Below, piece by piece: positions 1 through 24,000 of a stretch of DNA of 64,000 bases. Location of the stretch: contig OZ116704.1 in NCBI GenBank assembly GCA_964199315.1, positions 26,660,001-26,724,000 of the forward strand. The letters are read 5' to 3'. Below the pieces are notes generated by a model. That model was not told the DNA's origin and did no database searches. It saw only the letters and a program-made list of their open reading frames with translations. The first letter of the stretch is position 1; each line of letters starts with the position of its first letter. Source of the DNA: Orbicella franksi. Taxonomy: Eukaryota. The position numbers were made by a program, and so were the translations under genes.

Positions 1-378
1 GATTCTGAAACACTTAAGACACCAATAGACTTGCCTTTTGCAAGGTCTATAGATCAACCGGAATGCATTATATAGGTAGTAATTTAGTTCATTCGTTCGT
101 TTGTGCGTTCATTCGTTCATTCATTCAGTCAGTCATTTAATGTCAATAATACGGAGCGCGCTTGTGCAATCACCTGGGTCAGAGGTCCGTGTTTAAAGTG
201 CTTGACAACACATATAATAAAATACTTGACGTAATCCAAGATGGAGCTAAAATGGTACACGAGGTGAACAATGAAATATCACCGCTTGGTAACACAGGGC
301 AGCTAAGATTAGACTGAGTTCTCCGAACGTTAAACTCAACAAACGGTAAAATTCTGTTGTGGCATTAAGTCAACTTAC

Positions 379-543
379 CAGGTGGTCCAGGTTCACCAGG
401 TGTGGTATTCCCAGGGGCGCCTTGGCTGCCAGCGTCACCAACAGGTCCGGGAAAGCCATCGAAGCCTGGCACCCCATCTACTCCGTTGCTCCCAGGCTTT
501 CCTTTTTCACCTGGCAGGTCAGGTCCAGGATCACCAAAAGGAC
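379..543 (-). CDS. collagen exon 35
   Basis: (G)[17 protein letters not shown]...GEPGPP(G); acceptor TCTAG, donor GTAAGT; phase 1-1. Confidence 0.92.
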
Positions 544-3004
544 CTAGACACCAAAAGAAAAAGAAATCATGGGTGCACAGCAGGAGATAATATTTTGATG
601 AAAATTGATCCTGTTAAAGGTATGTTATTGTCAGACAGATTCTAAATAGATTGTAGTATAGTTCCACTGTCTTGGAAAGCAATCTAAAAATGATTTACTG
701 ATGAACTCCAAGTTAATGAAGAAAAATAATCACATTTATTACATCTCTCAGACACTACGCGTGCTGTGATAGGTCAGTTAAGTGTGCCATCTTCTACTGT
801 ATGGCCCCTAAAATTTAAAGCTGATTTTGTTGCCAAAATACCGTAGAATTCCGAAAGTAACGGCCCCCGTTACTTTTGGATTTAGCAGGCAAAAGGGGCC
901 GCTACTTTCGGGTAGCCGTTATTTACGGGTAGCCATAACTTTCGGATGGTTAATAACGTTTGCACAGTAATAGTCGTTTCAGACAAAGCGGACGTGTAAC
1001 ACAAGAAATCAAACGTTCCGTTTATGCATGTTTCCAACTACCCGCATAAACAAAGCAGACTGCACAAACCAAAAGAAGGCTCTAAACCCGTTGGTACTAT
1101 AGGTCGAAAGTATGATGATCGCATTATATCGCAATGAATTTATCATTTGACTCTGCCTCTAGACAAATACAGCTTATAAATCATAGTTTCATTAAAATTT
1201 TAGTCAAGTTCGAAATAATATCACAGATAACACTCTTCAAGTCTATGTTCAGTCCTGCATTCAGGCTGTTCCGCGGCATGATCCACGCTTGAGAACAGAG
1301 ACTTTCTCTTTTAGTGACTTCTTCAAAGGGCCGCTACTGCTACTTTCGGGGGAACCGTTACTTTCGGGGAGCCGTCGTTTATTTATTTATTTATTTTTTT
1401 TTTTTTTGGGGGGGGGGGGGGCGTTACTTTCGGAATTCTACGGTACGGAATTAAAGTAACCACAATGGAGACACTAAAGACAAAATTGTTTAAACAGTGA
1501 ATTTATATTGTACCTTGAAATCTCTCAATACTCTAACGGCATTTAATTTGTTTACCTCTGCCAAAACTATCCCAAAACTAAATATGAAACGAAATGGAAA
1601 TTTCAAATATAAATTTTAATAATTAACTGTCATGGTTTATGTTCTCCACACGACACCAAATTTGGTCATTTTATACTGTTGTTTGCAGAGGATAACAAAG
1701 AAATGTACCAAGAATTATAACACACATGTACAGCCATTGTACTCCACACTGAAACTTTTGTTTTTCGACGTTCGTATTGCCGTTGCAGTTGTGATTTTCT
1801 TAAACTCGACCCCTATGTTGTGATTTATTGCCAAGTGTTCTCAACTTTCATAGCAAGCAAATGTTTAAAATTTTCACTTACATTAAATTATGTATTAGGA
1901 CGTGCTTACAACTTACAACGATTTCCAATTGGCTTATTTTGCTATTGACGTGCGTCAATCATTTCAAGCTGTTCCGAATAGAAATTGTTTCCCGAACTCG
2001 TAAGATACAAACAGCAGAGATATAATAAATATTATATTAACCAAACTATGAATTAATTTGCAGAGTTTGCAAAGTTACCAAATAATTGTGTACGCGCTTG
2101 CACAGGATTTTAAGCTGACAAATAGACAATATAGTTATTATTTCAAAATACAACAAAATACACCCTATCAGACAGAAAAAAAAAAAATTTGAAAAGCACC
2201 TTGGATGCCCGGATCTCCAGGAAAACCAATTACACCCTTTGATCCTGGCAAACCACGAACGCCATCATCACCATCCATTCCTGGAATTCCGCTAAGTCCA
2301 ATAGGACCAGCATCACCTTGAAGAGAATAAAATTAATTGTCATTCATTAGTAAAAATCTACTGGCATTCTATCACCTTGAAGAGAATAAATTATCATTCA
2401 TTAGTAACTATCACAAATGCCGGCCATTTCCTTATTAGCTGTGCTACTCTCTATCAATTCTGTTGCAGATACTGAGTAGCGTAGCATTGTGCCCTTGTTA
2501 ACAAAATGACGGCCGCCTCTTTACGTTTTCGAAGTGTCTGTGAAGAGGATTGACATAAAGTTTTGAACGACTAGCAGATTTATACTGAAACAATTAGATA
2601 TTCACTCTCAGTTTTTATGAGTAGTATACAGTTGACGAGTGTGCAGCTCGATTCAACTATTAAGCAATTAGATTATGAGCTCAAGATTTCTATCGCGTGA
2701 TTACATTGCTCGCTCTCGATTTCTATCCATGATAGTTGACTTGGGCTGCGCCCTCGTCAACTATCAAGGATAGAAATCGAGAGCGAATAATCTAATTGTT
2801 TTAGTATAAATCTACTAGTCGTTCAAAACGTTATCTAAATCCTCTTCACAGACACCTCGAAAACGCAAAGAAGCGGCCGTCATTTTGTTAAAAAGCGCAC
2901 ACTGCTACGCTACTCACTATCTATCACAGAATAGATAGTGAGTAGCATAGCCAATCAGAGAACGGCATTAGTGATAGGGTTGTCGTTCTTAATTAACCCG
3001 TTTT

Positions 3005-3055
<51 letters not shown>

Positions 3056-6000
3056 CATGACGCGACTTAGATCTTGTTTCGTTGTTGTTGTTGGCATGAT
3101 GGGACCTATTTTTCTGGGATGCTAGTTCCTTATAAGTTATCCTTTAGCATGATTGCTGTAATAATTGTCTGGGACATTAATAATAACATTCATAATCTTG
3201 GGTGGAGAGAGGCGCTGTCTAAGTATATAGTGTCTTGTCCAAGAACAAAACCCACTAATCCTGCCAGAGTCCAGTTTGTTCGATAATAACTAACCAGCGC
3301 TGTGTCTCCTCGCCTAATGACACAATAGAGGGAAACATAAACACGGGAGCACATTCAGTTAGTACCTGGATCACCATTGGCTCCAGTCTCTCCACGAGGT
3401 CCAAGTGGTCCTATAGGCCCTGCATCTCCCGTGTCTCCTTTAAACCCAGCTGCTCCTTGGAAGCCGTCATCCCCCTTAAGCCCGTCAAGTCCATTCAAAC
3501 CTGGTTCTCCGGGGGGGCCTGGGTCACCAGGATCACCTCTGACTCCTTTTGAGCCTGGTGTTGCTTCACCTGAAAATGACAACACAACACGACTGCTGTG
3601 ACAACATTGTTTGCGTCAATTTTGTAGTGAAGAATCAGGACACATACAAGCTGTAATGTCCAGCTTGATGCCATTGTTGATCTCTACAGAACAATAGTGT
3701 TATTCTCCTAATTTTGATTCCTATAACACTGATTGTTATGATGATTGTTATACATTGAATTATTCGGCTTCAGCTGATAACCCCTACCTCGACCTTGATT
3801 ATTCTGGATATCACAAAAACCTCATCCAATAATTGTTAAACATATGTGAGAAGTAAATGGTAGTTCAAAATAATATCTCCTATGTTAATTGTCACACTAT
3901 TGTTATAAAATAGTACACATCATTGTTGAGTCACATTTTGCCAGCAAACCATAAAGTAAAACTGAGCAAAAAGTGTTAAAGGGTAAGTGTCTTAATACAG
4001 AATATAGCTGGAATTAACTGTATACCTACAACTTAAGGTAAGAAGAATCATCCAAGGGATACAAACAATATCAAAGAGGGCTGAAAATGTCCGGAGCTCA
4101 CTTTCAAATTTCAAGTCATAAAAGCAAACTAACCACAAGGAGGATACGTTATGCTGTATAATTATAAGGATATACAGAATCCCAAGAGGACTTAAAAAAG
4201 TTCAAGCTTAACAAATGTTTTATCCTGTCTCATCCTCCCTAATCAAAAGCCCTATGCCTGGGCTGCCTCGTGTAAGTTGTTTAATGCAAAGAAATCCACT
4301 GCCAAACCAAACAAGCATAATGCAAGCGTAACGCTAGATTAAGTAGACAGGATACGTTTTCACTTCCGTTAATTTTACGAATAAAATTCAATCTGCCTCC
4401 ATCTGGCCTAATTCGACTCTTACTGGAAATTAATTTCATAGGTTTACACCTGTTTGCTTGCTCTCAAAAAGTGCAAATTATATGATAGTTTTTAATTGGC
4501 TCATTGTAATCCCTGGATTTTTCCTGTCTTTGGGTTACATTTCGCAAAATATGCGCTTTTAGAGGTTAGTTTTTAATCCAGTCATTGTCATCTTTAGATT
4601 TTTCTGCATCACTGAAACCCGTCACTTCAACGTTTTAAGCCTGTTATTTGTTGTCAAATTTGGTTTAAACACAAGCGAGTTGCGTGAACCGAGGGCTCGG
4701 ACGCTAACAAAATAAAATGCTAAAAACAGCTTGTCACAAATAGCTACAACGGCTTGAGTCTTCAAGGTCTACATCCCAGTCCCCGTGAAAAATAGTGTCT
4801 CGAATCTGTAGAGCAGGGTTGAAACTTGCATTTCCAAAATAAATAGCAAAATCAATTGCAAAATCAATAGCACCAAACGTCAATTCATCGGCGGTTGTAT
4901 ACCTGTCTTTTATAGATCTTTATAGTCAAAACTGATTAACTCTCAAATTGCCAGAACCGCCCTTTACAGGTATCTCACATTAGGAACGCAAAGAACGGTT
5001 ACACAAGAATGTCTTATACAGGAATGCACCAAAGTCATATCCATATCCTCGTTGCCTGGTGTCCGTGTCCACATGACTTTGGTCACGTGGACATGAGGCA
5101 AAACCTGGAAATGACAGAGCTTCCAATTCCCTGTCTGAGATGAATGCGATTACCATGATTCCCTGCAGGCGCATTTCATAGGGGGAATTGACCATTTGAT
5201 CACTGAAGATTTTTAACACTGCAACACTTAAATACTCCAATTTGTGGAGTTTTTTAATGTAAAAGTAACCTTTGGTTAGTACGGACCAAGAGCAGGTAAC
5301 ATTTTTGCTAATGGTCAACCACTGGTCAACATTATTCTATAATTTAGCCATTGAATGTTACCATAAATCAACCAATAGGAATGTGCATTAGATTCAACTA
5401 AACAACAGCTGTATAACAAGGTTCTTTACTGAGTGACGTTCCTACCTGGTGGTCCTTCATCGCCTTTAAATCCTTTATCTCCCACCATGCCTTTAGGGCC
5501 TGGAGGTCCTGTCTGACCAGCTGGACCTGTCGGACCTTGGTTGCCGAACATCCCAGGGAGACCCTCAACACCGACAATCCCTGGGATTCCTTTAAAACCT
5601 TTAGGTCCGTCCCTGCCGGGTTCACCTACCGGTCCTAAAGAAAAAAAGTACAACTGGGCTGCAGTCATCAGGGTGTCATCATACTCAAAAACAATGATCC
5701 TATCTTACACATTGGAGTAAACTACAATTGATTATTAGCGTTGTACAGTTGTACACTTTCTCACATCAATAATAAAATTCTCATATGATACTCATTGTAT
5801 AATAGAGTAGTACTTCCCAGTAGAATTGTTCGAGTAGTCACAGTTATAATCTACTCAATTATATGGTCCTAATATCATTATACCAAAACGTTTTAACAAT
5901 AATATGACCCCCTGAATGAAGAGATAAAATTTCATTGAAACAACAATGATAATGACAGCAAATAAACAACCGCAACATTGCTGGGTTGTAAAAGCGTTAT

Positions 6001-9000
6001 TGAGCCCATATATTCTTCAAAATATTTGGGGATTCTAAATCTAAATTAATCAGAAAGATTTCCCTGAACAACAAGCTCCAAGTAAAGTAAAATCTTTTTT
6101 CTCGGTCTGCCAAATTTTATGGAATTTCACCAAAGGAAATGCGAGAACATTCACTGGCAACCCATGCATTTTCCTTGGAAACTAAAGAGAGCCACCTTAA
6201 GATGCTGGCTGGAAGACCACTCTAAATTTGTGTGTGTGTTTTACTTGTGATCTCTAAGCTCTCTTCTTGCATTCTGCTGAAATCTGCAGAGTAAAGTCAG
6301 AGAGGGAGAAAGAAATCAGGGAGTTCAGTAACATACATACCTCTGCAGCTCTTTTCTACTGTGGTCCTGACCAGTCCTAGAAGTTCATCAAAAGTTTTTG
6401 GGGTCAAAATGTCTTCCGGGCTATCTACTAATGTAGACAGCTGATTCCTATCAACACTCCCAATACCAATTGCAATTACTTTCACTCCCAGATCTTTGAT
6501 TGGTTGAACAGCATCAACAAGGGGTGTTTGATCAGGAGCAATATCAGTTCCTGTTTGATTACCATCTGTTAGCAGGACCATGACCTAAGAGGTGGGAGAC
6601 AAATCATGATATCATAAACATTCGAAGATATTAACTAGCTCCTTTAACTTCAGGTAGAAACAAATCCTGTCCATAACTGAAGTCCCCGAGGAAAAGCAAG
6701 CTCAGTTAAACAGCATTTGACTTGTTTTACTTGTATCATTGGACATCCCCACTAGAAATTCAGTCTTGAATTTATTCAGTCCACTAGAAATTCAATCTTG
6801 ATCAGATCAGATCAGATCAGATCAAATCAAATCAAGACTTTATTTATCCACGGTAAAGATTAAAGCTATATGCTTATGGGGCCGTGCACTAAAATAAAAG
6901 AAAAAATAATCAACACTGTAACCTACTATTACTACAATTAATTCAAAAATATGTTTTTAAAAAATCATACAATTAAACCTTCTATCTACAATTACTAAAT
7001 CCTCTTTTTACCGTTCCCAACCTCCCCCTAATCTAAACTCCCCTGGGAGTCTCATCACAAGATTATATTCTGGTTGCTATTTAAGTTCGCTTCCCCTGGG
7101 AGTTTGAGACCTCATGGTTCTGCTGTAGGTTTAGCTCTTCTGAAAAGGGAGGTATAAGGTTCTTGGTGAACTAAAAACGAGGAGTATAATAAAAGGTTCA
7201 ATTAATCACCACACTAGTATAAATTAGCACTACTATGGGAGTTCTATTTTATGGACATCTTGATAAACATCACATTCTCCTCATTCAAGTAACAAATTGG
7301 TGTCAGTTTTTCATGTGTCTGTCCTGTTATTGATCATGAATTTTCTGATAACATTATCAAAGTAGCTGTGGATTGACAATGAATTTGACAACGCTATGAT
7401 GAAAGTCGTTGTCAAAAACAGGACAGATACGTGAAACACTTGCGTCAATTTGGCGAAAAACTGATGTCATTGTTTGCTCTCGCTCATTGCATAAATGATA
7501 GATTTGTGTGTCTGTCCACTGACAATAAAAATTAGCCAATCAGTGTGAGAATTTCTGCAGTTGCTGTAAAAATAACGTTTTATTATATGGCAAAGCTCAC
7601 TATTTTGGCTCAAAATAGTTTCCAGCACTTAGATTTTGATGGGTCGTTATAACCACTCGTTATCACTTGATGCTATAATCATGGTATCGAAAAACTGCTC
7701 AATCGTTGGTGAACACATTGTTATCATTTTCATGACACAATAGGTTACCATAGCAACAGTATGACCTGCTAAAAACACCCTTAATTACAGCTTTAGGGGC
7801 TTATAATCAAATTTGATAAGCATGATAAGACACAAATTTTGGCAAAGTTTAAAAAAATTCTGTACAAAGGGTTCAGAGCCACCTTAACTTTGAAAATTTA
7901 AGGTGGCTCTGAACCCTTTGTACAGAATTTTTTCAAATTTTGCCAAAAATTGCGTCTTATCACGCTCATCAAAATTTGATAATATAACAAGATTTCACAG
8001 TGCCGTTTTAGAATTATCAGCCCATGAAGCTGTAATTAAGGGCGTTTTTAGCAGGTCGTACTGTTGCTATGCTAACCTATTCTGTCACGAAAATGATAAC
8101 AATGTGTAATCAGCAATGATTAGGCAATTTTTTGATACCACGATTGTAGAATCAAGTGATTACAAGTGGTTATAATGACCCATCAAAATTTAAGTGCCGG
8201 AAACTGTTTTGAGCCACGTTAAGCTGGCAAGATGAACCAAATCCTGTGCTGGGAAGATGGCACTATCTTGCCTGCTCGGGATTAGGTGCTATGCCCTGCC
8301 AGAAAACTTTCCCCAAAGTCGAAGTAGGTTCCCATAAAGTAAATCCGCCATTGACCACCCCTTGTTTGATCAAGGTGACTTGAAATTGGCCTCATGTTTT
8401 TTTGCATGCTTTTGGACCTGACTCCATAAGTTCCAAATCTGCCACCTTGAGTAATAACTAAATCTATACTGCATACTTTTGAATAGTCAAATAAACAGTT
8501 AAATAGTTGAAACACAAAATAATTTGAAATTTGGAAGGAATGGTAATTTCACTTGACAAGGCTCCAAACAGAATAACTGTAAAACAACACTGTTGAAACA
8601 TATCACCATACAGTAGGTAATAATTGAGATCTGACCTTTAGTAACATACTTTACCTTTCTAGAATTTTGTCTCATTCCGCCTTCTTCTGTAAATAATTCT
8701 TCAGAGGCAACCTTTAGGGCCAAATCAATTCGCGTAATACCAGCTGTATGAGGTACATCATCCACACGCTTTTTTATGTCTTCTTTGTCGTAGGATGTGT
8801 TAAAGCTAATCTGCATTTTGGCACTTCCGCTGTATTCAATGAGGCCAACATGAGTAAGGGCACGGCCAATACTGAGATAGTCAACTACTCCGTTAATAAA
8901 TTGTTTCAATTTAGCAAACTCGTCTGAGAGAATACTACCAGATGCATCCACAAGGAATGAATAATCAGCATTTTCTTGACCACACACTAAGAATGAAAAG

Positions 9001-12000
9001 AAAATAGAAATTATCTCAACATTTAAGAAACATCAGACATTTGGCCATGTAAAGTGGCTACCATGCAGATTAAATACCTCTTACTAACCGAGTTTGAAGG
9101 CCGTACTGTAAGTTACGGACCGAGTTTTTCCCCATCGATTTATGGCCCAAACAAAGCGCGCGGGCCATAAATTGACGGGGTAAAACGAGGATCCGTAACT
9201 TACAGTACGAACTGAAAAAACGTGGTTAGTAAGACATATATTATATCTCTACTGTGTGTCTGACAGCTCGGCTGTTCACGTGGAACAGCTTCAAATTTCT
9301 GACGCACCTCGAAAGCAAAGCAACTCAATTTGAACTGACCGTTTGAAATCGTTAGTAGGTATTAATACACAATTTTGTTCTTTTACTTGCTAAAGAAGTT
9401 AAGAACACTTGCAATTGTCGATAAACCATGAAACATTTTGGCAACAAAAACAGCTTCAAATTTTAGCGGGCCGTACAGTAGATTACGGCCTGCTAAATTG
9501 ACCAATCACAGCATGTGTACTAACTGAGATATAATAAGAATGTTTACGTAATCCTGAAAGAATTTTCCCTAAGGAGAGTCACATGTAAATGGTTCTGCAA
9601 TATCACAAAAGGTCGATAACCTTACTGTTTTATTAATCTACAAAATAAAATGTGAAATAGCCAGACGATTTTGTGCATTTTTCTTCTGCAATAGGCCTTT
9701 TTGCAACAGTTGGTAATGTGACTGATTATATCTAAACTTTGAGCTACAGCTAAAGGAATTTCAGAACTGGAAAGAGCCAGAACACCAATTTTCAGACCAA
9801 TGCTATGTAAGGTTGACATTTAATGACAATTTGAATATTGCAAAAATTAGAAGGTTTTGTATGGACGCAAGGAAGCTTTGCCCTCCAGAAACATTTTATG
9901 TTATTAATCACTACAAAAGGAAGCTGCTGGCAAATAACTACAGTGGAACCCCGCCTTACGACCACCCTGTTATTACGGCCACTTTATTCTGGCCCCAAAA
10001 AAGCTCAGTCAGTCATTTTCTTATTTAAAGAACCCCTTTAATACGACCACCATGTTAATGCGACCAATTTTCCATGGCCCGAAGGTGGTCGTATTAACAT
10101 GGTTCCACTGTATAGGGGATAGGAAGAGAGGAAAAATACTAGCAACAATGAAAAATTCTAGATTCTTAAACTGAAAGGAACAGACAGTAGGCCAATGATG
10201 ATTGTAATGTCTTATGGTTACATTTACCACTACATATGAAGATAATAATTGGTATCACTCACAAATTACTCCTGTCTGGCCTTTCTCGCCCTGCGGTCCA
10301 GCAGCACCTGTGTTGCCAACAGGCCCGACATCACCTGTTCGTCCAGGTGGTCCAACCGGGCCAGGGCTTCCGCTGCTTCCTTTTTTGCCTTGTACTCCAG
10401 GTTCTCCTTTCTCACCTGAAAACGGTTTCATTCAAATTTCAGAAGATAAAAATGCTGCCAGGCAGAGTAACTCAAGCACAAAACAGTCTCCCTTGTATAC
10501 AGGGTATGATTTATCTACTTTACCATTTTGTCCTAATTCAGTTGACAAAGAAATTTGCCTACTTAATTTTGGTAGTCAACATGGCTAGTACCTAAGGGAA
10601 TTTCACCAGCCAAAACTGAAAATCCAGTGGTATTTGGCTAGTAGACCACCGCCAAGGTCGAGTCCAGCTAACCCCACTGACACATTACCCTTACCCTGTA
10701 GGATACCTTGGGAGGTGAGCTGTGGCTTAGTTACCATGGTGACCTCCTTGCTGCTGCGGGGATTGTTGCTATCCTTTGTCTCTACCTTAACAGTACCTAC
10801 CCTCCAAGACTTCAAATTGGGTTTGAGTTTTAAGGGGGCATTGTCCTTATGTCAGGTAATAAGTCTATTTACTAAGCTTGCCTACTGTAACTATCAGTCT
10901 TTGTGCTGTTTAAGTGTTCTTGTTCTGGAAATTAGTTAACATCCAGTTCAAAGATGCTGTACCATACCAGGGGTAACCTCAATGTACAAAATACCTTTTG
11001 TTGGGACACCTGGTAGTCCCATGACCCCAGGGTCTCCTGGGGGCCCACTTATACTGTCACCAGGTTCTCCTTTCCGTCCCCGTGGACCCTTAAAGCCAGG
11101 GGGTCCTGGCAGTCCAGTGCCATTTGCTGGTAATCCTTTTGGACCTAGAGATCCACCTTCTCCTGGACCACCTGGCACACCAGGCAATCCAACAGTGCCA
11201 GGTTCACCTTTGATCCCTGATGAAACAGATTGAACATGTTCATACCTCAGCAACAACCATTATAACAAATTGGAATAGTTTTATAAGAAATTAATGCATG
11301 CTTGATGTATAGAAATGCCAGTAGACATATGTTAGTGTCTTCAGGTGCATTTTTAGACCTCAAAAGTATATAACTTTGTAATAGAACAACACAACAAAAA
11401 GTCCATTTAAGAGCACAAAACAAATACCAAAATACTGCTACTTATGGCTGTTGTGTCCACTAAGGTGGCTGACAAAAGTTTCTGGCACTTTCCAGCAGTT
11501 ACACTTGGATGGATAATACCACCACTCTTAATGAGGAGATGTTACAAATTATTAGCACTGCACAAATGCTCAATCATTAGTGATTTATCTTTATGGCATA
11601 CTACTGTAGGCTACCATGGTGAGAGTACATGTTAAAAACATCCTTAATTTGGCTTCAACTCAAAACTGGCACTCAAAGCTAAAACTTATGGTGTTTCTAC
11701 CTGGTAATAGGTTTTACTGTTGCTATGGTTAACTAGCTATAATGCCATGAAGATGGCCACAACTCGTTCAGCAACAATGGGGCTTTTTTTTTTTTGTAAC
11801 TGCCAAAAACTGTTGTCAAGTTAGGAATGCACATAGTGGTTAACCCTCCCTCATGCAAGAATTTCCACTATGCCATTGATTAGGGGTGTGTGGATTTTTC
11901 TGATTTACAACCAGTGGATAAAACGAATGTAAATAAAACACCTTTGCGTCCTTTAAGTCCATCTTCTCCCTTTGTTCCATTTGGTCCATCTCTGCTGTCA

Positions 12001-15000
12001 CCTGCTTCTCCCTCCATGCCCTGTGCTCCTTTATCTCCTGGTGGGCCCTCGAGGCCTATCACGCCTTGATCACCCATATCACCAACAGCACCTCTAGAGC
12101 CATTCCGTCCTTTTATACCTGTGAGTATACGAGATTAACAATCCAACAGTGACACATTACCCAAAGAATGACACATCAGACAGATTGATAGAGCAGTCAG
12201 TGTGACACAGCAAACATAGACTGATACATCAGAAATAAGGTGACATGACTACAATGTTGGACATTAATTAACTCTTTGTTGACGGGAGGTTTTCATTAAT
12301 AATTAACCCATCATATTCTTTAGCTAATATTTCTACAGGTATTTACAGTACTGTAGCCTGTAATATCTCATTTGAAAGGGCATAAAATATACTTAATAGA
12401 AAAAAAAACATTTACCTTCATGGAAGCTAACATTACCTTGATGATAATTTTTTTTGCAAACCATAGAATTAAATATAAAAGCTAAAAAATAGTTGGAAAA
12501 CCAAAAATATTGTTAGAACACTATTTTCAGAATTAGTGTCAAAAGAGAGTATTTTCCCTGATCTATAACCAAATGTATCCTGAAAACCGAATTAAAAACG
12601 ACCTGATCTTAAATTAACCACGATTTTTTTCTGGACGTAAACAAACATATTGCATTTCCGTTACTATGGAAACCCCCAGTCAGTCTCATGTTACGCATCC
12701 CTGAATCAATAGGCCCTTTGCAGCTAAGCCATCACGTGACCTATTTGTCATAAAATTATGGGCTACAACTTAAAGAATGCCATGAATGGAAAGAACGCAT
12801 CGAAAATATGAAAATGGCCAAGTTTGAGGCTCCCATCGTTATAGAGGGAGATTTTATGACGGTCCGAATTTTTAAAAGAATAAGAAGATTTGTATGGAAA
12901 AAGTTGTTGGAGAGCAAACTCTTGCTCTCCAGCAACATTTTCCATACAAATCCTCTAAATTTTCCGAAAATTCAAACTGTCGTGAAAACGTACTCTTTAA
13001 TTCCAGGGCCCTCAAACTTGGCCATTTTGGTATTTTCGATGCGCTCTTTCCATTTCTGACATTCTTTAAGTTATAGCCCATAATATAAAAATTTTATAGG
13101 AAAAATCTGGTCACGTGACCCCAGCTGCAAAGGGCCTATTCATTTCACAACAAAAAGTCAACTAAGCGAAGAATTTATTCAAGATTTCTGAGCTCTCCAC
13201 TTTCAATAACGATTGACATGAACATAATTTAATCATTAGCCAAGATTCTTAAGGTAAAAATGGCAAACCGAAGGGAATTTAGTTACATTTGAACAACATC
13301 TGCTAAAATGGGTGACCACGAGCGAAGACTCACGTAAGTTTGTTTACCTCAATTTTTCGCTTTTTATTTCCAGATTACTGTAAAAATTACTTTCTAATTA
13401 CTTGAAATACCCTTCGGAACGTCGTCCTGGTCAAAAACCATCATCAGAATCTTTGCAAATCATTTTAAGCTCACCCGATTCAACTCCGCCATCGTGACAT
13501 GAATTTGCCTGATGTTTGTCTCACCTAAAAATCGCCCAGTGATTGGGTAATTATGTCAGCTTCCTGTTGTCCAAATTTGGCATCGAACGGAAGTAACGCA
13601 AATTTTTGGCGATTTTTTTCTCTTATGGGTACACGCACGTACCCATAATAATAGCATTTGTTGATGAAGAGTTAATTGACACCACACTTATAGATTGATA
13701 AGTCAGAAATTGACTCTTGACACAAGGCGAGACATTAGAGTTTGATTGACACATCAGACATATTGACACTTAAGACACAAATTCAAACATTTTATCATGC
13801 TTTCAACCTGTTATCTCTGATTCATTGATTTTTTAACCTCGGCACCTAAACTAGGATTTACACCTCTGAGTGGTACCCATGTATTATGATCGTCTTTGTG
13901 TCCACAGGGACCTTTGGGTATAATTAACAATTGAGGTAAGGTAGTCCCCAGCTCACACTGTCATAGTAACTTAAAAGCTGGTTTGTTGCATGACTCAAGG
14001 ATGCTACACAGCCATAAGATGTAATTACAACTGAGTTTCACATAAGTATCTTTTATCTATTTTACACTTCTGGAAGAGAAGCTCTGAGCGAGAGTGGTGA
14101 GCAACCACAGGGACAACTCAATCCAGATTTAAATTAGTGCGATCAACCACCAAGCCTAAAGCTTGACACCTTGCATAATAATAAAAAAAATGCGTAATCA
14201 TTACTCAGCGGTAAGGCAGCTACCTTTTGGACCTGCAGGACCGGCGGGTCCTTGTGCATCATCTCCTGGGAGCCCTTTGGGTCCATCAGGCCCAGGTAAG
14301 CCACGTTCTCCTTTTCCACCAATAGCACCTGTGTTGCCCTTCAGTCCTTCTACACCAGACTCACCTTTGTCGCCAATTTTTAATTGACCTGTGATAACAA
14401 CGACAAAAACAGCATATATACATGTATGGAAAGCTCTCTGCTAGGGAACCTGCTGTTATCTCCTAAGAGTGCCAAAATACACATTAATTAGATCAAATTT
14501 TGATCTATCAAAAGATTACCACAGTGCCAAATAGAGGTACGAACAGCAACATTTATCATGGAAATTCTGCTCGATAGCTTTTAGTAAATTAGGTTTTTTG
14601 TGAACTCTTTAACTTGATAGGGGAGTGTTTGCTGATGTCATCTTTTACATTTTATATCAATAGCATTCCACTTTGCTAATCAATAATTGACTCCAGAAGT
14701 GTAGAGAGCCTGTTTAACATAGTAACTGGAGAAATGCTTAGCTCTTTGGATTTTGCAGTGAGTGCTAATGAGTCCATATATTTTCGAGAATTTAGACGTT
14801 TTAAGTTTGTGTTATACAAATTCTATACCTTGCAAAGGGCTCAAATATCTTGGAAAAGTTAATCATGCTAAGCCCTTTTAACATTCTGAGCCGATATCAT
14901 TGCACATGCAGCTCTACCTGAACTGAAGTACTAATGCTAATTAGGTAAAAATTGTAAACAAAAATTCCCCTATAAACATCACAAATGAGCTGTACTAAAA

Positions 15001-18000
15001 TGAAAAGTGAATGATAGCTGCAAAAATTAAACCCATAAGGAGTTTGGAACATGTAACATGCGTTCACAAATTTTGAATGTTCATACCTAAATTTCCAATA
15101 CCCCCTGTTGATCCTTTTGCTCCCTTGGCTCCATCAGTTCCTCTCTCACCCTTCTGACCTTTTGAACCATTTTTGGCCATTTCGGGGATTGGCAAGATAG
15201 GAGGTTGTCCCTTTTGGCCATCTGCACCTTTATTGCCACGCACACCAGGATCCCCATCAACTCCAGGAGAACCATCTTCTCCCTACAAAAACAATTTAAT
15301 ATTTAAGGACATTCAGGCAATGATAATTGATATTATTGTAACAAAGAGATTCCATGTTGCTGTGCATCTCAGTGTTCAGTACTAGTAACAAATCACATTT
15401 TGATGTCTTATTGAACAAACACATGACAACGTGGAATCTACTCCTTTTATATACTAAATAAAGAAAAAAGAATGTTAAAAATGTCATCAGTGCATCTGTC
15501 CTCCAATAGATCGTAAGTAAGAACCATCAAAATACAAGAATAATTTGACCTATTATATAAAGTTAAATAGATTTGTATGACAGTTAGCTATAGCAAAGCC
15601 ATAGTATCAAAACTCGGTATTCATAAACATGCGTCATAATCCAGTGATGCACGCTCATGGTGTGAGCAAAGTTAACTTTGCTTTGTGAGAAAGTTTTTCC
15701 AATGCCAATGCTAAAATAAACAATGATGTTAAGAAGTGGTCTAATTAAATAGAGGAGTTATGATGTACGCCCCCCCCCCCCCTCCAGTACATGGGAAGTT
15801 GGCTGCACCTTGAGCAACTCTTATGCTTCTTTTCTACTTTCAAAACTGTGTCCATGCATCTTAACTCAAAAATGTAGACCAAGGCAAGAATCAATAATTG
15901 TTAATTAATTAATAAAATTGTTAATAAGTTAATAAATATTGCTAATTTTCGAACTTCCTCTGTGGCCAGATGACTAGTTAATTACTCGTCAGAATGCAAG
16001 AGAAATTCTAATGTGGAGAATGTTTTGTGACCGTAGCGTGACAAGTTGTCATACTAATGAAAACTCGTGACTATTGTTTTGTTTCTAAGCCACTGAGCTA
16101 TTTTGATTTCATCTCTAGTTTCAAATCATGTGATATCTTGTTTCCAGCATGAAATGCATGATCAATTGAATCAATTGTTGTAATCTTTGGGGTGAATTTG
16201 GGCCGATCAGTGGAATAAACAGCAACTTGTGAATATTGAGTGAGTCTTCAGTGTCTCTGGGAATGAATTGGATACATAAGGAAATTCCCCACACTAACAT
16301 AGTTAGCAAAGCCACAATGCCAAACTCAGCATACATCAGGGTGTATGATAATTCAATAATGATGCTTGTGGTGTGAGTGGATTGGTTTTGTATTTTATTT
16401 TTCTCGTCTTAATTATACAAATATTAAGGTGCGTTTCTTTGGGGTGATCTGGATCAGAATCAGTGATCCAAGATCAGTCTGGATTATGGTACATCAAAGG
16501 AACCGATGATTACTGCTAATAAGCTAGTTAATGATGTTATTCCTTATGAAAGTAAGTTAAAACCAGAGCTTTAAATCAAATACAAACAACTTGTGATGGT
16601 GTTACTAGGGGAACACTGCCTTGCGTTTGGTTAGCCTATGCGACTTCTGGCGATAGCGTGACAAACAACCTCACATATCTCCCCAGCACTACAAACTGAA
16701 TGGCAGACAGCAGATGCTGGATCAGACAAGAGTATCGGTTAGCAAGCGACATTCAAAGGTGATGAAAAGACAACAAGCTTGGGGGGAGTCACAGCACAGA
16801 CTTAACTGCACCATTCAGGAGAGACCTTTTGTTTATTATGCAGGAATACATGACCAACCTTGTCTCCAAAGGAAGGGAGGGAGGGAAAATTTAATGATAG
16901 ACTTACAATTTAAGTAATAGCTATGTTGCTTAGACGAACTGCAAATGGACTCTGAACAGTTGTTTGAGCTTTTATACGTAGGCATTCATCTGTTGGTAAG
17001 CCAGTAGGAAAGGCTGTACTACCGAGCAGCTTACCCTAGCACATGTAACATCTTTAAGATGAATAGCGCTTTAATGCTTTGCACCAATGCTATGGTTCAT
17101 TAGAACGTTCTGAAGGTAACAAAGCTACAATGTTTAAGGTCTAGCTACAATAAAGCTTACAGTTTGCTGACCTTTGGAATACAACTGCTCAATAGCTCTA
17201 TAGAAAGCGATGCCGCCATGAACGGCTCATTGAGAACGTACCTCATGCTCCATTAACTATATTTTACTGGCGTGACAGTAAAATCTCATTAAACATACCT
17301 GAGGAAAAGCAATTTCTTACCGACATATTTTTGTTGTTTTACAGTACATTTTAATGCAATGTATGGGGTACATGTATGTCTATTTTCACTTAGATGGTTA
17401 TTTTCCTCCATTTCCTCTCTAATCAATGTATTTTACACAATGAGTGACAAAAGTAGCTGAGATACTTAGAAAATGATGCTTTTTGATATTTTAACCCCTT
17501 ATTCTATTTTATTTGCATCTTAAGCGTTAATCCCCTGATACCCCTGGCCGCCCAATTCAATGTTGTGTAGGTGCTGTGGTCTGTGCAGTCTTAGAAATAG
17601 AAAAATCAACACTGTTTGGGGGAAGGGGGGCATGGTTTCAAGACGCTCAAAAATCGAATTTTACTGCGAAGTGTCTCAACACTTTTGTCGCTCATTTGTA
17701 TTTATATACAGGTGTATTTTTTTCATGCCACTAAAACATTATCATAAAAAAGGTGGTTTTGAGCTGAAACTAGGTACTGTGTACTTGAACAATTACCCTC
17801 CCCCTGGCTTTCCTTAAGCCCCCGGCGTAAAATACACTTCTTACCGGTGGTCCAGGCAGACCTTCAGGACCCTGCTCTCCTAAGCTACCATTGTTACCAG
17901 GGGAACCATCATTTCCGGGAGGACCAGGTTTTCCCTTTTCGCCACGGTCACCTACTTCACCTGGCAGACCTGCTGGTTGAAACAGTTCTTCTCTTGGACG

Positions 18001-21000
18001 CTTGCCACTCTCACCTTTTTCTCCAATATTCCCTCGGGGACCTGGAAAGCCCTTAGCACCCTAAAGAGGAGGACCAATAAGAACCCACAAGCTATATGTG
18101 ACTATTAAATAACTGATATACTACGCATGGTCTGATTGATAAAAAAACCTATTGTTTATTGTACCAGTATACCGATGTGGCAGCAATGCAAGAGAACAAT
18201 AGAACTCAGAAAGCTGCAGCTTACATTGGCTGAGATATCAAAAACAGGAATATCTTTTCAATTAACATATAAATAGAAATTTCTATGGAAAGTTGGTCAC
18301 AATATAATGCTTGATGTTTTACCCCAAGGGAAAAATTCTATGCCAAATCCATTTATGGTTCAGTTTAGAATGACAGTTTGTTGTATCACCTCATGAATTT
18401 GCTGATAATAAGTAACTTGATCATGAAAGGACAACGTTTCCTCTCTTTGATAAAAACTTTTTCCAGTTATTTTACAAAAGCAATAGATTGCTCTTTATAT
18501 AGCCTTAGCGGAGCAATAAACCACTTAGGATGTTTCGAAAACAACACCCAATGGCTCACTATTTCTAAGCTTTTCTTGTGTTCTCACAACATCCTGCATA
18601 GGTTTATTGTGTTGGTGAACCCATAGAAAGAGCAGTCTATTGCTTAAGGAAGCCTTAGGATTTCAGTTTTCATGGTTGACACTTATTTGGTTTCATGTTT
18701 GGTGATCATAGGAAACAACTAATAAAGAAAAATGTCTGTGTTAAAATCTCACACCTGCTCTGGACACAAATAAAAGGAAAACGAAAATCCATTAGAAATA
18801 AAAAGGAAATGAAACAGATGCTAATTGCTTATGTAATGTGGCATACAGGTATCTTTTCTAGTCTAAACAACCAGTTCTCTGATTCCTCTCAAAATGAGTA
18901 CAAAATTTTGTCTTCATCAAGTTTCATGCCTCCTGGAATTTGCAGTGGATGCCATGTGAAATCAAACAGTCATACAAACCAATAGCCTGGGATGAAAAAC
19001 AAGAGGTTAATTCACTGGTTCACCCTAGATCAGCCAGTCATTTGCCATCTTATGTCCATTCCAGACTGCATTGTATATGCATTCTGGGATGGAAACAAGA
19101 TGGCAGTTGACTGATATGATGAATGTTTAAGCTTTGTTTATAACCAGAGTCATTACAAAAGAATTGCTCTATTTGTTGACTATCATAGAGGAAAAACACT
19201 CATTTGACACAAATTTTCACAAGTAAGGCTGAATTTGTCAATCAGAAATGGTTTTTCAGTACCATTATTTCTGAGACAGGGTAATGACCCGGTATCAGAA
19301 TCAATTGTTGCATTGATAACCTAGGGCTTAATCACAAGTACCATGCACTTACCGGTGGTCCTGGTACACCAGCTGTGCCATCTGCTCCCCTTGTGCCAGT
19401 AGGCCCTTGAGGACCCTTGATCCCGTCTGGCCCAGGTTCTCCAGCATTTCCAGGCTCACCAGCATTGCCTTTTATTCCTTTAAAACCTTTTGGACCAGGA
19501 CGGCAAACGGGACATTTATCTTTTTCTCCTTTTTCACCTTTTTCACCCACTGGTCCTTGTTCTCCTGGTTCCCCAGTTGACCCTACAGGTCCTTGGCCAC
19601 CAGGTTTAGGGGATGGACAAACATTCTCTAGGCAGAACACTGGACCAGCTACAAACAAGAAATTGAAAAGTTAAAATACGCTGTTGCCTAACCAATCCCT
19701 TAAACATGGTTGTCACAGACATCAGATGTAGTCACAATCTTCAACTTCCCTTACAGCCTTCCTTGTTAAGGAAAAGCACTGTTCAAATCACAGTCACTTG
19801 GACGTAATACATGAAACACGAGAGACAGCGTTTCATCGGGATATCCAAACACTGAGAAGAGAATACCACATGCAGTGGAGTATTTTTGATGAAATTTGAG
19901 GTGTTTGGATAGCCGATGAAACATTGTCTTGAGTGTTTGATATATCTTCTCAATCAAAACAAAAACTAAGGATTAAATGGAGAAGTTAAATCGTCAAAAT
20001 CTATGCTAATTAAGATTGGGTATCCAAACCCTCTTCACGGTTGTGATTTTCTTTGTTTTTACTTGACAAATTATTAATGAGTTTGAGAATGTTCCTTCCA
20101 GCATTCAATGATAATATATCATGGCTGCCACAGACATCACTTATCAAAATTCCCTGACTTTTCTCTGACTTTCCCCTGGTAAAAATAAAATTTCCCTGAC
20201 CAAATAAATATAAAATGACAAATAGAGTAGCAGCTTCTGGCCTCCCCTTACAACTGTCCTTTCCACTTGTTCATTAAAACTGATAACTTTTCAACATATT
20301 TTCCTTCTTCATTAAGGTATCAGCATACCCCAAAATTGATCATTCTTCAAAAAAATTGTTTTTTGCTTTTTCAGATAGATCTTTTGAGAATCTTTCAATA
20401 TGTCCTTTTGCTTTGCTGTATTTATTCTCTCACATCAGAAAACTACCGAATGGCTGACCATGTTTGAAATCACCCTATAACATATTGCAAACCCTTGATC
20501 ATTGACTATGTCATGTATGCCTATGGAGTGTTCTCTTGTAATGAATGGTATCTGATTCAAAAGAAAGTTTATTGAGTAGAAACACTTCAAAAAGCACTTG
20601 CTATCAAATTTTATCATAGATCCTACTAAACTGCTTTACTTTCCTTGGTACCCTGATGCATTTTTTCCTTCTGTAGCTTTCAATAATATTTATTGGCCCC
20701 TTTCCTAAAAAAATTGGCCTGTAAAAAAGGTTTTCAGGGGCAACTTTGGCCCTCCCTCAAGCAAAATTTCTGGCTGGCTGGCTGGGTTTCTTGGTTTCAA
20801 GTTCCAACCCAACTGTCTTGCTAAGGACTTTCTGCAGTCTTCTGTGTCAATATCTGGGGTGTTTTCTCCTACATTTTTGGTATGTACTAAAACAAACATT
20901 CCCTTCAGAGTCTGTGGCTAGGGGAGGAAATACAGATAATATCCAACAATGGACAGCACCGCTGGTAACAATTGTTTATTATTCCCACTAAAGTGAAATT

Positions 21001-24000
21001 TAAACAATTTATATCATTTTTGTTGACGGCACTGCATCAAAGAGCCTCTCCTGCAGTCTCCTATTAAAGATCTTTAAAGCTAAAATTCTTAACAAAGATA
21101 GATGAACGAATAGAAGAAACTTTGTTTACATTAATGTCACTATTCCACTTATTCAAACTAAGTGTAGGATGTAATGCAACAAGGTAAAAGTACATATACA
21201 AACAACAATATGGCATAATTGAAGGGGACAGCACTGTGGCAGGTTGGACATGACTTCATGATAGGCAAAAAAAAACTTCTCACTTATTCTCCCACTACAT
21301 GGAAATAGAAGAAAAGTACTGGCAGAACCTTTCTTATCTCCCCAGCACTGCACAGGCTGGATCAGACACGATAAAGGCCAGGGTATAAGATGGTAAGACA
21401 AAAGATATGCCAAAAGCTTGGGGGAACTGAACCAGGAGTGACCACAGTCTATGGGCAAATGTGACCCTCCATGGGAAAACAGGGATAAAGGTGATTAAGC
21501 ACACTAACAACATGCTAACACAGCATGCTTAGTATGCATTAAAAAGAGACACTTCTAGGGCAACCCACTACAATCAACACATGCCTTTGTAATATTATAC
21601 TTGTATCATGCACCTTTCTGTGAAATAAGCAGTGTACCTGTACCAACCCCAAAAATAATTAATAATCAACAGTGCTGCAGAAAATTTGATCCACAAATTC
21701 AGGAGTGAAATTTGCTTGACAGTTAACAGTGAGTAATTAAATCAGGTGTAATGACAGCTATAACACAGCACTATTACCTTTAGGTCCTTGGGCTCCAACC
21801 TCTCCCTGTATTCCTTTGAAGCCTTTAGGTCCAGGAGGTCCATCCATGCCTTTTGGGCCAGGCACAGGGAGCCCATTCTCACCACGCTCTCCCACATCAC
21901 CTACTGGTCCTTCTAAACCTTTTGGGCCTTCTTGACCCTCCATACCTGGAAAACCTGAGGAAGGACAAAGCATGCTTACTGCAGAGTGAGAGAATCATAC
22001 TTCTTGCTATTCGTCTTCTCTCTTGAGGAAGGACAAGGCATGTTTACTGAAGAGTGACAAATCACAATTCTTGCTTTTCTGTTTCTTTCCTCGGCAACAA
22101 ACTAACATCTAACTTTATATGCCCTACAATAACAGTTTCATCACTTACAATAGCACTACAATACCAGTTTCACCCCCCTGGAGGCTCGCACCTTCAGTGC
22201 TTGTTTTCCCAACCGTCTATTTCTTTTCCCCAGCCTGCTACTTCAAAACTTACTGAAAGCACTGAGCAGGGCATGAGAGCAATACAACCAGTGACGTCAC
22301 AAGGTTGTTTTTGGCTGTGCCAAGATGCCTCAACCAGCCAACTTCTAACAGCTGAAAACCAGCTTTAACTTACTGTTTGCAAAAAAAAAAAAAATTGCAG
22401 TGGTTTCAAGTAAGGTTCAAACTTTATTATCAAGCAAACAACTCTGAAATGAAAATTTCATTTCAGTGGCACTTTGAGTTGTTTTAATTCACCTTTTTTG
22501 AAATCAGTTTTGGAGTCATTCTTATTTTTTTTTTTTGTATCTCTTGCAATTGTCTTGCACATGCATGTTGCTATCCGCAGGTAGCAGTTTACAGTTTGAA
22601 CCATAATAATTTTCTATCAAAAGCGGCAGCTAGTTTTTTTTAGCAGTACACCAAAAAAAGAAAAAGAAGTTGGTGGTTATAGTGATATGCTGCTATTCTG
22701 GTGTTCCTAGTTGTGGTAGGAAAATTTTGCTTCTATTTTAGTCTTGCAGGTGGTATAGTATACTTGATTTTGTCAGTTTCAACCCTACAGAGTGTGAGTA
22801 GCAGGTAGTCTGCCTGTCCATGGCTTGTATTATGTGCAGGACAAGACAAGCACTAGAAAAAGCACAGTAAATTGTACTATGACCACAGTACAGTGTTATG
22901 ACCAAATTTTACCTTGTGTTCCCGGTGGCCCAAGAGGTCCTTCAGGTCCAGGAGCACCAACAGATCCTTTGGGACCAAAGACAGAAGCGCCTTGGTTACC
23001 AGGAGGGCCTATGTCACCTGTAGAGCCTTGAGGCCCACGGTCTCCAGGAGATCCGGCTGTACCTTTCATTCCTTGATTACCCTTCTTGCCTGGCAGTCCA
23101 CCCTGCACACACAACCATATATGAACTATCTTAAAGGAGAAGGTCACTCCATAAACATATTTCACTAAATTTAGCTACTCACCGAGGTTTCATCCTCTAA
23201 AGTGCAAGTTTTCCCCCGATGACATCAATCAATGAAAATATATCACTGATTGCCAATCAATAAACATTAATTGATTGATATTGATTGATCTAACCAATCA
23301 AAACTTATTGATAGTCTCAATTGTTATTGAATATCCCTGACTTTTTATTCATATCAATAAATGGTTGCACAACAGTAAAAACCTGCGTTTGGCAATGCAC
23401 AGAAAGACTTAGATTTCTGCATTATAATGCTACACTCAAACTGAATTAGTAAAATTCTCCAACGCATGGATAACAGATGCAAAAGAAATGTGCTTAGATA
23501 CCTGTTTATATCCATCTCAAATTGTAATGAAATGCTATGAAATCCCAGATTCAAAAGACACAGGTTCAACAACTCAGGAATGTGGCGTATTAGGGGCAAC
23601 ATTACAGTACAGCATATCGTACGAAAAGACTTAAGGTTCACAAAATCGGGATTCTGTGTGAACCCTTTCATTTCTAACAAAAAGCTCATGGGTGGACAAT
23701 AAAAAAATTGAAAATAGATAAAGAAAAGAGTTTGTAAAAAATGATTTCCTTTTGAGATGTTGTTAGGTTATAGTTTCAAAACAGTTGAACATCATTATTT
23801 GCAGTCATTTAAAATTAGTTTATTCTATTTTAAGATCCTCTAGGGAGTTTCAAGTAACAAGATTAGACTGTATGTAAAGTATAAATCAGAGCAAATAAAC
23901 TTTATTTCAATATCATTTGACGTTTTGAATATCTTTGTGAAACGAAATGTTGAAGTCAAGACTAATACTTTTTAAAAAGGAAAAAGTAATTCACATTTAG

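Follow-up and report, generated by a model that had tools for sequence, protein, structure and literature searches.

The closest described relatives of the collagen gene considered here come from Hydra and jellyfish. In Hydra Hcol6 the triple helices are interrupted by vWA domains, of which there are several (PMC12549020), and a 2023 survey grouped Hcol4 and Hcol6 as network-forming collagens whose COL domains are interrupted and whose C-terminal tandem domain is homologous to that of type IV, Hcol6 possessing additionally WAP and VWA domains and being encoded by one to four genes in every medusozoan genome examined (PMC9966395). These have been listed as 'collagen genes of unknown function' (Hynes 2012; PMC3308698), and a 2025 matrisome study did not find an Hcol6-like sequence in Nematostella (PMC12549020). 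In this work we analysed 64,000 nucleotides of the genome of the coral Orbicella franksi (GenBank assembly GCA_964199315.1, contig OZ116704.1, positions 26,660,001 to 26,724,000; this whole stretch is called the window), whose minus strand encodes a collagen with one complete vWA domain inside its Gly-X-Y helix and, judging from its orthologues, a type IV-like C-terminus. The Hcol6 sequence in Zhang et al. 2007 (J Biol Chem 282:6792) is said to be only partial. The initial annotation of the coral locus, whose author knew of no such collagen IV, overstated its novelty, as Hcol6 provides a precedent (PMC12549020, PMC9966395); for a mid-helix vWA collagen in a coral or any other anthozoan no description was found in a full-text literature search.

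A single collagen gene crosses the whole window: Gly-X-Y runs extend on the minus strand from 52046 to 404, and no plus-strand run was seen within the window. The exons and the intron at the site of the insertion are as follows (window coordinates).

10263..10415, minus strand: collagen exon directly upstream of the vWA (exon 29 of the initial annotation), ending in ...GEKGQTGVI plus 1 base of a Leu codon; phases 1/1; supported by RNA junctions.
8655..8986, minus strand: vWA exon 1, 110 full codons; phases 1/0; supported by Pfam VWA and RNA junctions.
6585..8654, minus strand: intron within the vWA, phase 0, splitting the domain at Pfam profile position 105/106.
6341..6584, minus strand: vWA exon 2, 81 codons plus 1 base, phases 0/1, ending with the C-terminal Cys and Arg, after which Gly-X-Y follows.
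5446..5634, minus strand: collagen exon directly downstream of the vWA (exon 32 of the initial annotation); phases 1/1.

Scripted splicing of 10415-10263, 8986-8655, 6584-6341 and 5634-5446 yields a single open frame, which reads ...HTAGITRID...VMVLLTDG...VEKSCR-GPVGEPG and reproduces the product originally written out for exons 29-32. Direct checking confirmed AG acceptors for both vWA exons and exon 32 and GT donors for exon 29 and both vWA exons; the acceptor of exon 29 and the donor of exon 32 were read by eye. The comparison with the Pfam VWA profile (PF00092, length 174) revealed matches of exon 1 to positions 4-105 (E 2.8e-22) and of exon 2 to positions 106-168 (E 2.8e-07); the two stretches abut and the exons therefore encode one complete vWA domain. 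From Cys to Arg the module comprises 191 aa, or the 192 codons of the initial annotation when the Leu codon is counted. All five positions of the metal ion-dependent adhesion site (MIDAS) are intact (DASGS at 8948-8934, Thr at 8747-8745 and Asp, in LLTDG, at 6566-6564), so that the claim of a complete vWA with an intact MIDAS spliced in frame into Gly-X-Y stands. A Cys is present at each end of the module (8984-8982 and 6347-6345), one residue from the collagen repeats, and brackets the domain as proposed. The flanking introns are of phase 1 and the internal one of phase 0, i.e. the module is a symmetric phase 1-1 unit, which fits exon shuffling. Among proteins of solved structure the nearest sequences are collagen VI alpha3, mussel PTMP1 (E 1.1e-12, second-best for exon 1) and the integrin alphaM I domain (E 5e-10), and a look-up in the ESM Atlas returned generic vWA clusters only.

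The splicing pattern is borne out by RNA evidence, which consists of assembled contigs of four public runs over 5300-10600; such contigs can lose rare isoforms. The joints 10263|8986, 8655|6584 and 6341|5634, all predicted beforehand, are present in 4/4 runs with GT..AG on the minus strand, and one contig of 3,879 nt in run X3 spans all four exons. A joint that would skip the vWA (5634|10263) is absent from those listed for the contigs of the four runs, and in three poly(A)/RNA-seq runs the intron bins have mostly zero depth, apart from repeat-derived peaks. The main transcript contains the vWA. A contig of run X7 (record 19) continues for 3,423 nt past exon 5634-5446 (beyond 5444), while only about 480 nt of coding exons remain in the window, and the gene therefore continues well past the left edge, which cuts it; the NC1 domain is expected beyond that edge.

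The missing end of the gene could be followed in its relatives. A HMMER search with vWA exon 1 over 1.8 billion representatives identified exon-sized genomic open reading frames as the closest matches (61-85% identity), the remaining matches being multi-vWA, collagen VI-like proteins with 25-35% identity. A word-indexed search, length-filtered in such a way that only exon-sized matches could appear, found 64 clusters of vWA exon 1 (57-98% identity) in genome, metagenome and Logan assemblies. One of these reading frames, P0101, is located on a 55-kb ENA contig (called sp2), of which 38.6 kb were examined (L004, L002 and L003). Between the window and sp2, 15 exons match in the same order, among them the two vWA exons and their collagenous neighbours; exon 5634-5446 is 59% identical to its sp2 counterpart, and orthologues of exon 10415-10263 were found in L002, L005/L006, L009 and L010. 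Beyond the last exon of the window sp2 exhibits four more collagen exons, then an exon passing from Gly-X-Y into GFHLVVHSQSTSIPDCP, and then two further exons. These last three exons encode two full C4 repeats (PF01413, E 7.8e-38 and 2.4e-27), the profile being spread over the three L003 exons as positions 2-26, as 26-109 plus the start of repeat 2, and as 27-109. The NC1 of sp2 matches the solved human, bovine and fly collagen IV NC1 chains with E of about 1e-38 to 1e-63; in the alignment with a solved NC1 fusion protein PMMPVSA corresponds to PMMPVAE / PMSMAPITG and TLKSG to TLKAG. The putative Met and Lys of the sulfilimine cross-link lie in these two stretches. In a second species (L010/L012) collagen exons, vWA, collagen exons and NC1 follow each other as in sp2, with NC1 exons, downstream of the vWA, that are 68-80% identical to those of sp2, and in two more species (L005/L006 and L009) the order collagen-vWA-collagen was observed within the 20 kb examined. 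No second vWA was detected with a vWA hidden Markov model built from the matches in the six frames of the window, in the 38.6 kb of sp2 or in L005/L006.

The helix preceding the vWA comprises about 24 recognisable collagenous exons (about 851 aa), and the one following it extends for about 610 aa up to the NC1, as measured in the sp2 orthologue. The layout is thus an N-terminus, an interrupted helix of about 850-930 aa, one vWA, a second interrupted helix of about 610 aa and an NC1, with the C-terminal part taken from orthologues. The vWA is located in mid-rod, as the initial annotation had it, and its approximate placement at about residue 929 fits the length recognised upstream; exons 1-3 were looked for and not located. 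Between 23103 and 10995 the Gly-X-Y repeat is interrupted at least 12 times (e.g. vf, vp, dkcpvcrp, preelfqpa, aq, rd, angt, is). Because collinear orthologues in two species end in a two-repeat C4 NC1, and because the helix is heavily interrupted, the assignment of the gene to the type IV family of collagens is supported by these comparisons; the original type IV-like label holds to this extent, with the gene's own NC1 lying outside the window.

The module is 191 aa long, without insertions or deletions, in five species, and these species agree throughout in the acceptor, internal and donor positions of the introns. Of the 191 columns 103 are invariant, including CGQ, the MIDAS, both Cys residues and the final SCR, as well as the motifs TRIDLALK and LTDGNQT beside the MIDAS residues. 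The pairwise ratio of non-synonymous to synonymous divergence (dN/dS) is 0.10-0.20, with saturated dS of 0.9-2.6. The vWA exons of the window and sp2 are 63% and 73% identical, compared with 39-63% for the collinear collagen exons, including 58-59% for the two that flank the vWA. Since five species share the module length, the intron positions, the 103 invariant columns and the low dN/dS, sequence comparison indicates that the insertion is old and maintained by strong purifying selection.

The remainder of the gene was modelled with less precision: exon boundaries were read by hand in the 3' half and are approximate in the 5' half, automatic chaining having given a noisy model. The following collagenous exons of the same gene were recognised.

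10995..52046, minus strand: about 23 further collagenous exons; boundaries approximate; collinear with sp2 from 23103 downwards.
377..3606, minus strand: three more collagenous exons toward the left edge, at about 3606-3358, 2317-2192 and 562-377.

The 5' exons are small (27-111 nt) and of phase 0, and the 3' exons are larger and mostly of phase 1. Exon 19650-19353 (minus strand) exhibits two Cys-bearing non-collagenous breaks, one at the start of the exon and an internal one, DKCPVCRP, whose CPxC pattern is kept in the orthologue as DQCPQCPP (L002:3046-3294) and may form an interchain disulfide knot within the rod. Two Cys residues inside Gly-X-Y (GSCGCDGEK) were found in the small early exon 38712-38650 (minus strand), which may be part of a 7S-like cross-linking region. 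A Cys-rich segment at 54089-53991 was considered as an N-terminal exon and dropped, as it had no convincing splice sites. An intron of the gene contains an assembly gap of 622 N (29591-30212), which could hide a small exon; the gap is bordered (flank to about 30340) by a short tandem repeat with the translation (CCAVL)n / (STLLY)n. A stop-free reading frame of 489 aa (47627-46161, minus strand) is located in the intron region 42408-47829.

The intron between the two vWA exons carries a foldback of about 610 bp (7606-8216), composed of nested inverted repeats of 112, 95 and 83 nt with 85-92% complementarity, the innermost arms being 2 nt apart. All runs show very high RNA contig depth over 7601-7954, suggesting that this region is a multi-copy element transcribed elsewhere. 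Intronic stretches at 7247-7423, 9017-9547 and 9902-10078 likewise show contig depth far above that of the exons, many loose ends and variant letters, which is the pattern of dispersed repeats (resembling short interspersed or miniature inverted-repeat transposable elements, SINE/MITE-like) expressed from other loci.

The coral chain was compared with several described protein families. Canonical collagen IV (human COL4A1-6, Drosophila Cg25C/Viking, Hydra Hcol4 and Nematostella NvCol4a/b) shares with it the long, often-interrupted helix and, with its orthologues, the two-C4-repeat NC1; the total helix of the coral chain, about 1,450-1,500 aa with the vWA inside, is close to the collagen IV norm of about 1,400 aa for a long helix. 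To our knowledge no canonical collagen IV has a globular domain inside the helix. Collagens VI and XXVIII possess vWA domains of the same Pfam family, and collagen VI-like multi-vWA proteins were the next-best matches outside the orthologue clade; however, they have their vWA domains outside a short helix (Gly-X-Y of about 250-330 aa in collagen VI-like matches), whereas the coral vWA has helix on both sides, and a C4 domain was absent from 4/4 collagen VI-like matches scanned with Pfam. In integrin alpha I domains and in vWF A1/A3 a vWA of the MIDAS type is inserted into its host via adjacent termini, as in the coral chain, and the disulfide of vWF A1/A3 resembles the Cys bracket of the coral vWA; the host is here a collagen triple helix, as opposed to a beta-propeller in integrins and a mucin-like chain in vWF. 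The mussel byssal protein PTMP1 (PDB 4CN8), presumably a collagen-binding protein, is an extracellular vWA protein as well, but a free one with two vWA domains and not embedded in a collagen. The strongest resemblance, as far as published descriptions allow comparison, is to Hcol6, which likewise combines vWA between interrupted helical segments with a type IV-like C-terminal tandem domain and likewise comes from a cnidarian. The coral chain occurs in a coral and in related, putatively anthozoan, contigs, while Nematostella was reported to lack an Hcol6-like gene. On the simplest reading of these descriptions, the coral chain would be the anthozoan, single-vWA representative of the Hcol6 class of Hydra and jellyfish.

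The vWA module is not confined to collagens. In the exon-1 tree the 64 rows group without exception in one well-supported clade, remote from the outgroups of collagen VI-like sequences, and nested in it is a subclade of 21 rows, sister to the P0101 group. Two members of this subclade, P0131 and P0207, are located 21 kb apart on a contig of 3.46 Mb (ENA ERZ25067557, ctg35472_71x_l), each just downstream of a CUB exon and with the same internal vWA intron as the collagen module; no Gly-X-Y block was found within 10 kb on either side of them. P0123 and P0131 (57-62% identical) had been considered as distant orthologues of the collagen, which was rejected, as the contig contains CUB-vWA genes without collagen within 10 kb; given this context, they are paralogous copies of the module. 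The units are arranged as follows.

L007:9550-12117 and L008:8138-13099: tandem CUB-vWA units.

This arrangement suggests either secondary shuffling of the collagen's vWA, with a CUB gene as the recipient, or a single gene in which CUB-vWA modules are repeated. In at least one lineage, CUB-vWA genes thus appear to have received a copy of the vWA module of the collagen, and the nesting suggests the direction collagen to CUB, with an insecure root of the tree. The copies support the view of the module as a mobile phase 1-1 unit. The vWA phylogeny, proposed at the outset as a way to find the donor, revealed the CUB-vWA copies nested in the clade, but neither the tree nor these copies pinpoint the original donor of the module.

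Our preferred interpretation, to which we assign a probability of roughly 0.7, is that the gene encodes one alpha chain of a network collagen of the collagen IV family, into whose helix a two-exon, phase 1-1 vWA module was shuffled, at an intron, long ago and then kept, and that the domain forms a predicted mid-rod node. The N- and C-termini of a vWA domain lie side by side; integrin I domains sit in a loop of the propeller, and vWF A1/A3 are closed by an end-to-end disulfide. With adjacent termini the chain can therefore loop out the globular domain and re-enter the helix. In the proposed model each chain would loop out a vWA closed by a disulfide, probably an intrachain one formed by the two invariant bracketing Cys residues, and would then resume the triple helix. 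Up to three vWA heads would be present per trimer and would make a node about 60% along the rod and about 175 nm from the NC1. The MIDAS, being intact and invariant, suggests that an acidic side chain of a partner is bound in a cation-dependent manner; it would offer metal-dependent contacts to acidic residues, either of other molecules of the matrix (e.g. collagen helices or laminin) or of adjacent protomers. The ordinary collagen IV net is joined end to end via NC1 and 7S, and the node would provide it with an additional, lateral cross-link.

Several observations weigh against this interpretation or limit it. The NC1 was observed in orthologues only, the gene's own C-terminus lying outside the window, and at the other end no Gly-X-Y block was found in the window upstream of 52046, exons 1-3 and a 7S domain not being recognised there. 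An intact MIDAS is no proof of metal-dependent ligand binding, and depending on chain composition the number of vWA heads in the trimer node may be one, two or three. The likeness to Hcol6 is incomplete, as the latter is described with multiple vWA and WAP domains and the coral chain has a single vWA; a WAP-like 8-Cys pattern was not seen in the stop-free minus-strand segments of the window, although no WAP profile was run. For a link of the vWA collagen to the skeleton or to the mineral-facing matrix, which had been entertained initially, we found no evidence.

Among the other explanations, it is possible, if doubtful, that the anthozoan insertion is independent of Hydra Hcol6, i.e. that vWA modules were shuffled convergently into a collagen IV paralogue. 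The difference in the number and kind of domains from those described for Hcol6 (PMC12549020, PMC9966395) and the reported absence of an Hcol6-like gene from Nematostella (PMC12549020) would agree with this, as would the mobility of the module, seen in the nested clade of CUB-vWA genes without nearby collagen. However, both chains share an interrupted helix, a vWA and a C4 end (in Hcol6 by description), the number of domains changes easily, and a loss in Nematostella would be equally simple. A bolder scenario, somewhat unlikely in our estimation, goes further: corals, perhaps Hexacorallia, would have gained the mid-rod vWA independently of Hcol6 as a third, MIDAS-dependent lateral joint, absent from bilaterian basement membranes, and the module would later have been re-shuffled into CUB-vWA genes. 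If true, this independent acquisition would be a natural experiment showing how new nodes can arise in a network collagen.

We consider it unlikely that the vWA is mainly a device for assembly or folding, which registers the chains and restarts the N-terminal helix of about 850 aa, either via association of the vWA domains or via interchain bonds between their Cys residues. Collagen helices zip from the C-terminus, and a large break therefore needs re-nucleation; the vWA is located between two long helices, and an invariant Cys lies one residue from each helix end. The chains of collagen VI depend on their C-terminal vWA domains for assembly, which by analogy may lend some weight to such a role. 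On the other hand, pure registration would not obviously demand a MIDAS, TRIDLALK and LTDGNQT that are invariant over dS > 1, and one Cys per chain on each side is an odd number for an interchain knot. The roles in ligand binding and in chain registration are not exclusive.

Finally, it is extremely improbable that the vWA exons are a cassette or a nested gene and that the main collagen transcript lacks them: we found no positive support for this, beyond the capacity of assembled contigs to drop rare isoforms, whereas single contigs span collagen-vWA-vWA-collagen in four runs at a depth equal to that of the flanking exons, no 5634|10263 joint occurs among those listed, and five species have kept both the module and the phases of its junctions.

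Among the scaffolds of the animal matrix, collagen IV is the oldest and most conserved. Its network is not known to be built other than via the 7S and NC1 ends and lateral contacts of the helices. A conserved and, judging from its sequence, apparently functional adhesion domain in mid-rod would mean that cnidarians use a further way to wire the collagen IV network. Known since 2007, the Hcol6 class is still 'of unknown function'; three results make it experimentally tractable in corals: a single-vWA version is expressed, the MIDAS and the bracketing Cys residues are invariant across lineages saturated for synonymous changes, and CUB genes have, as it seems, received copies of the module. A recent statement, according to which an anthozoan model lacks Hcol6-like collagens, is qualified by this result as well. 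For the biology of corals, the vWA-bearing chain is a candidate organiser of the mesoglea or of the basement membrane.

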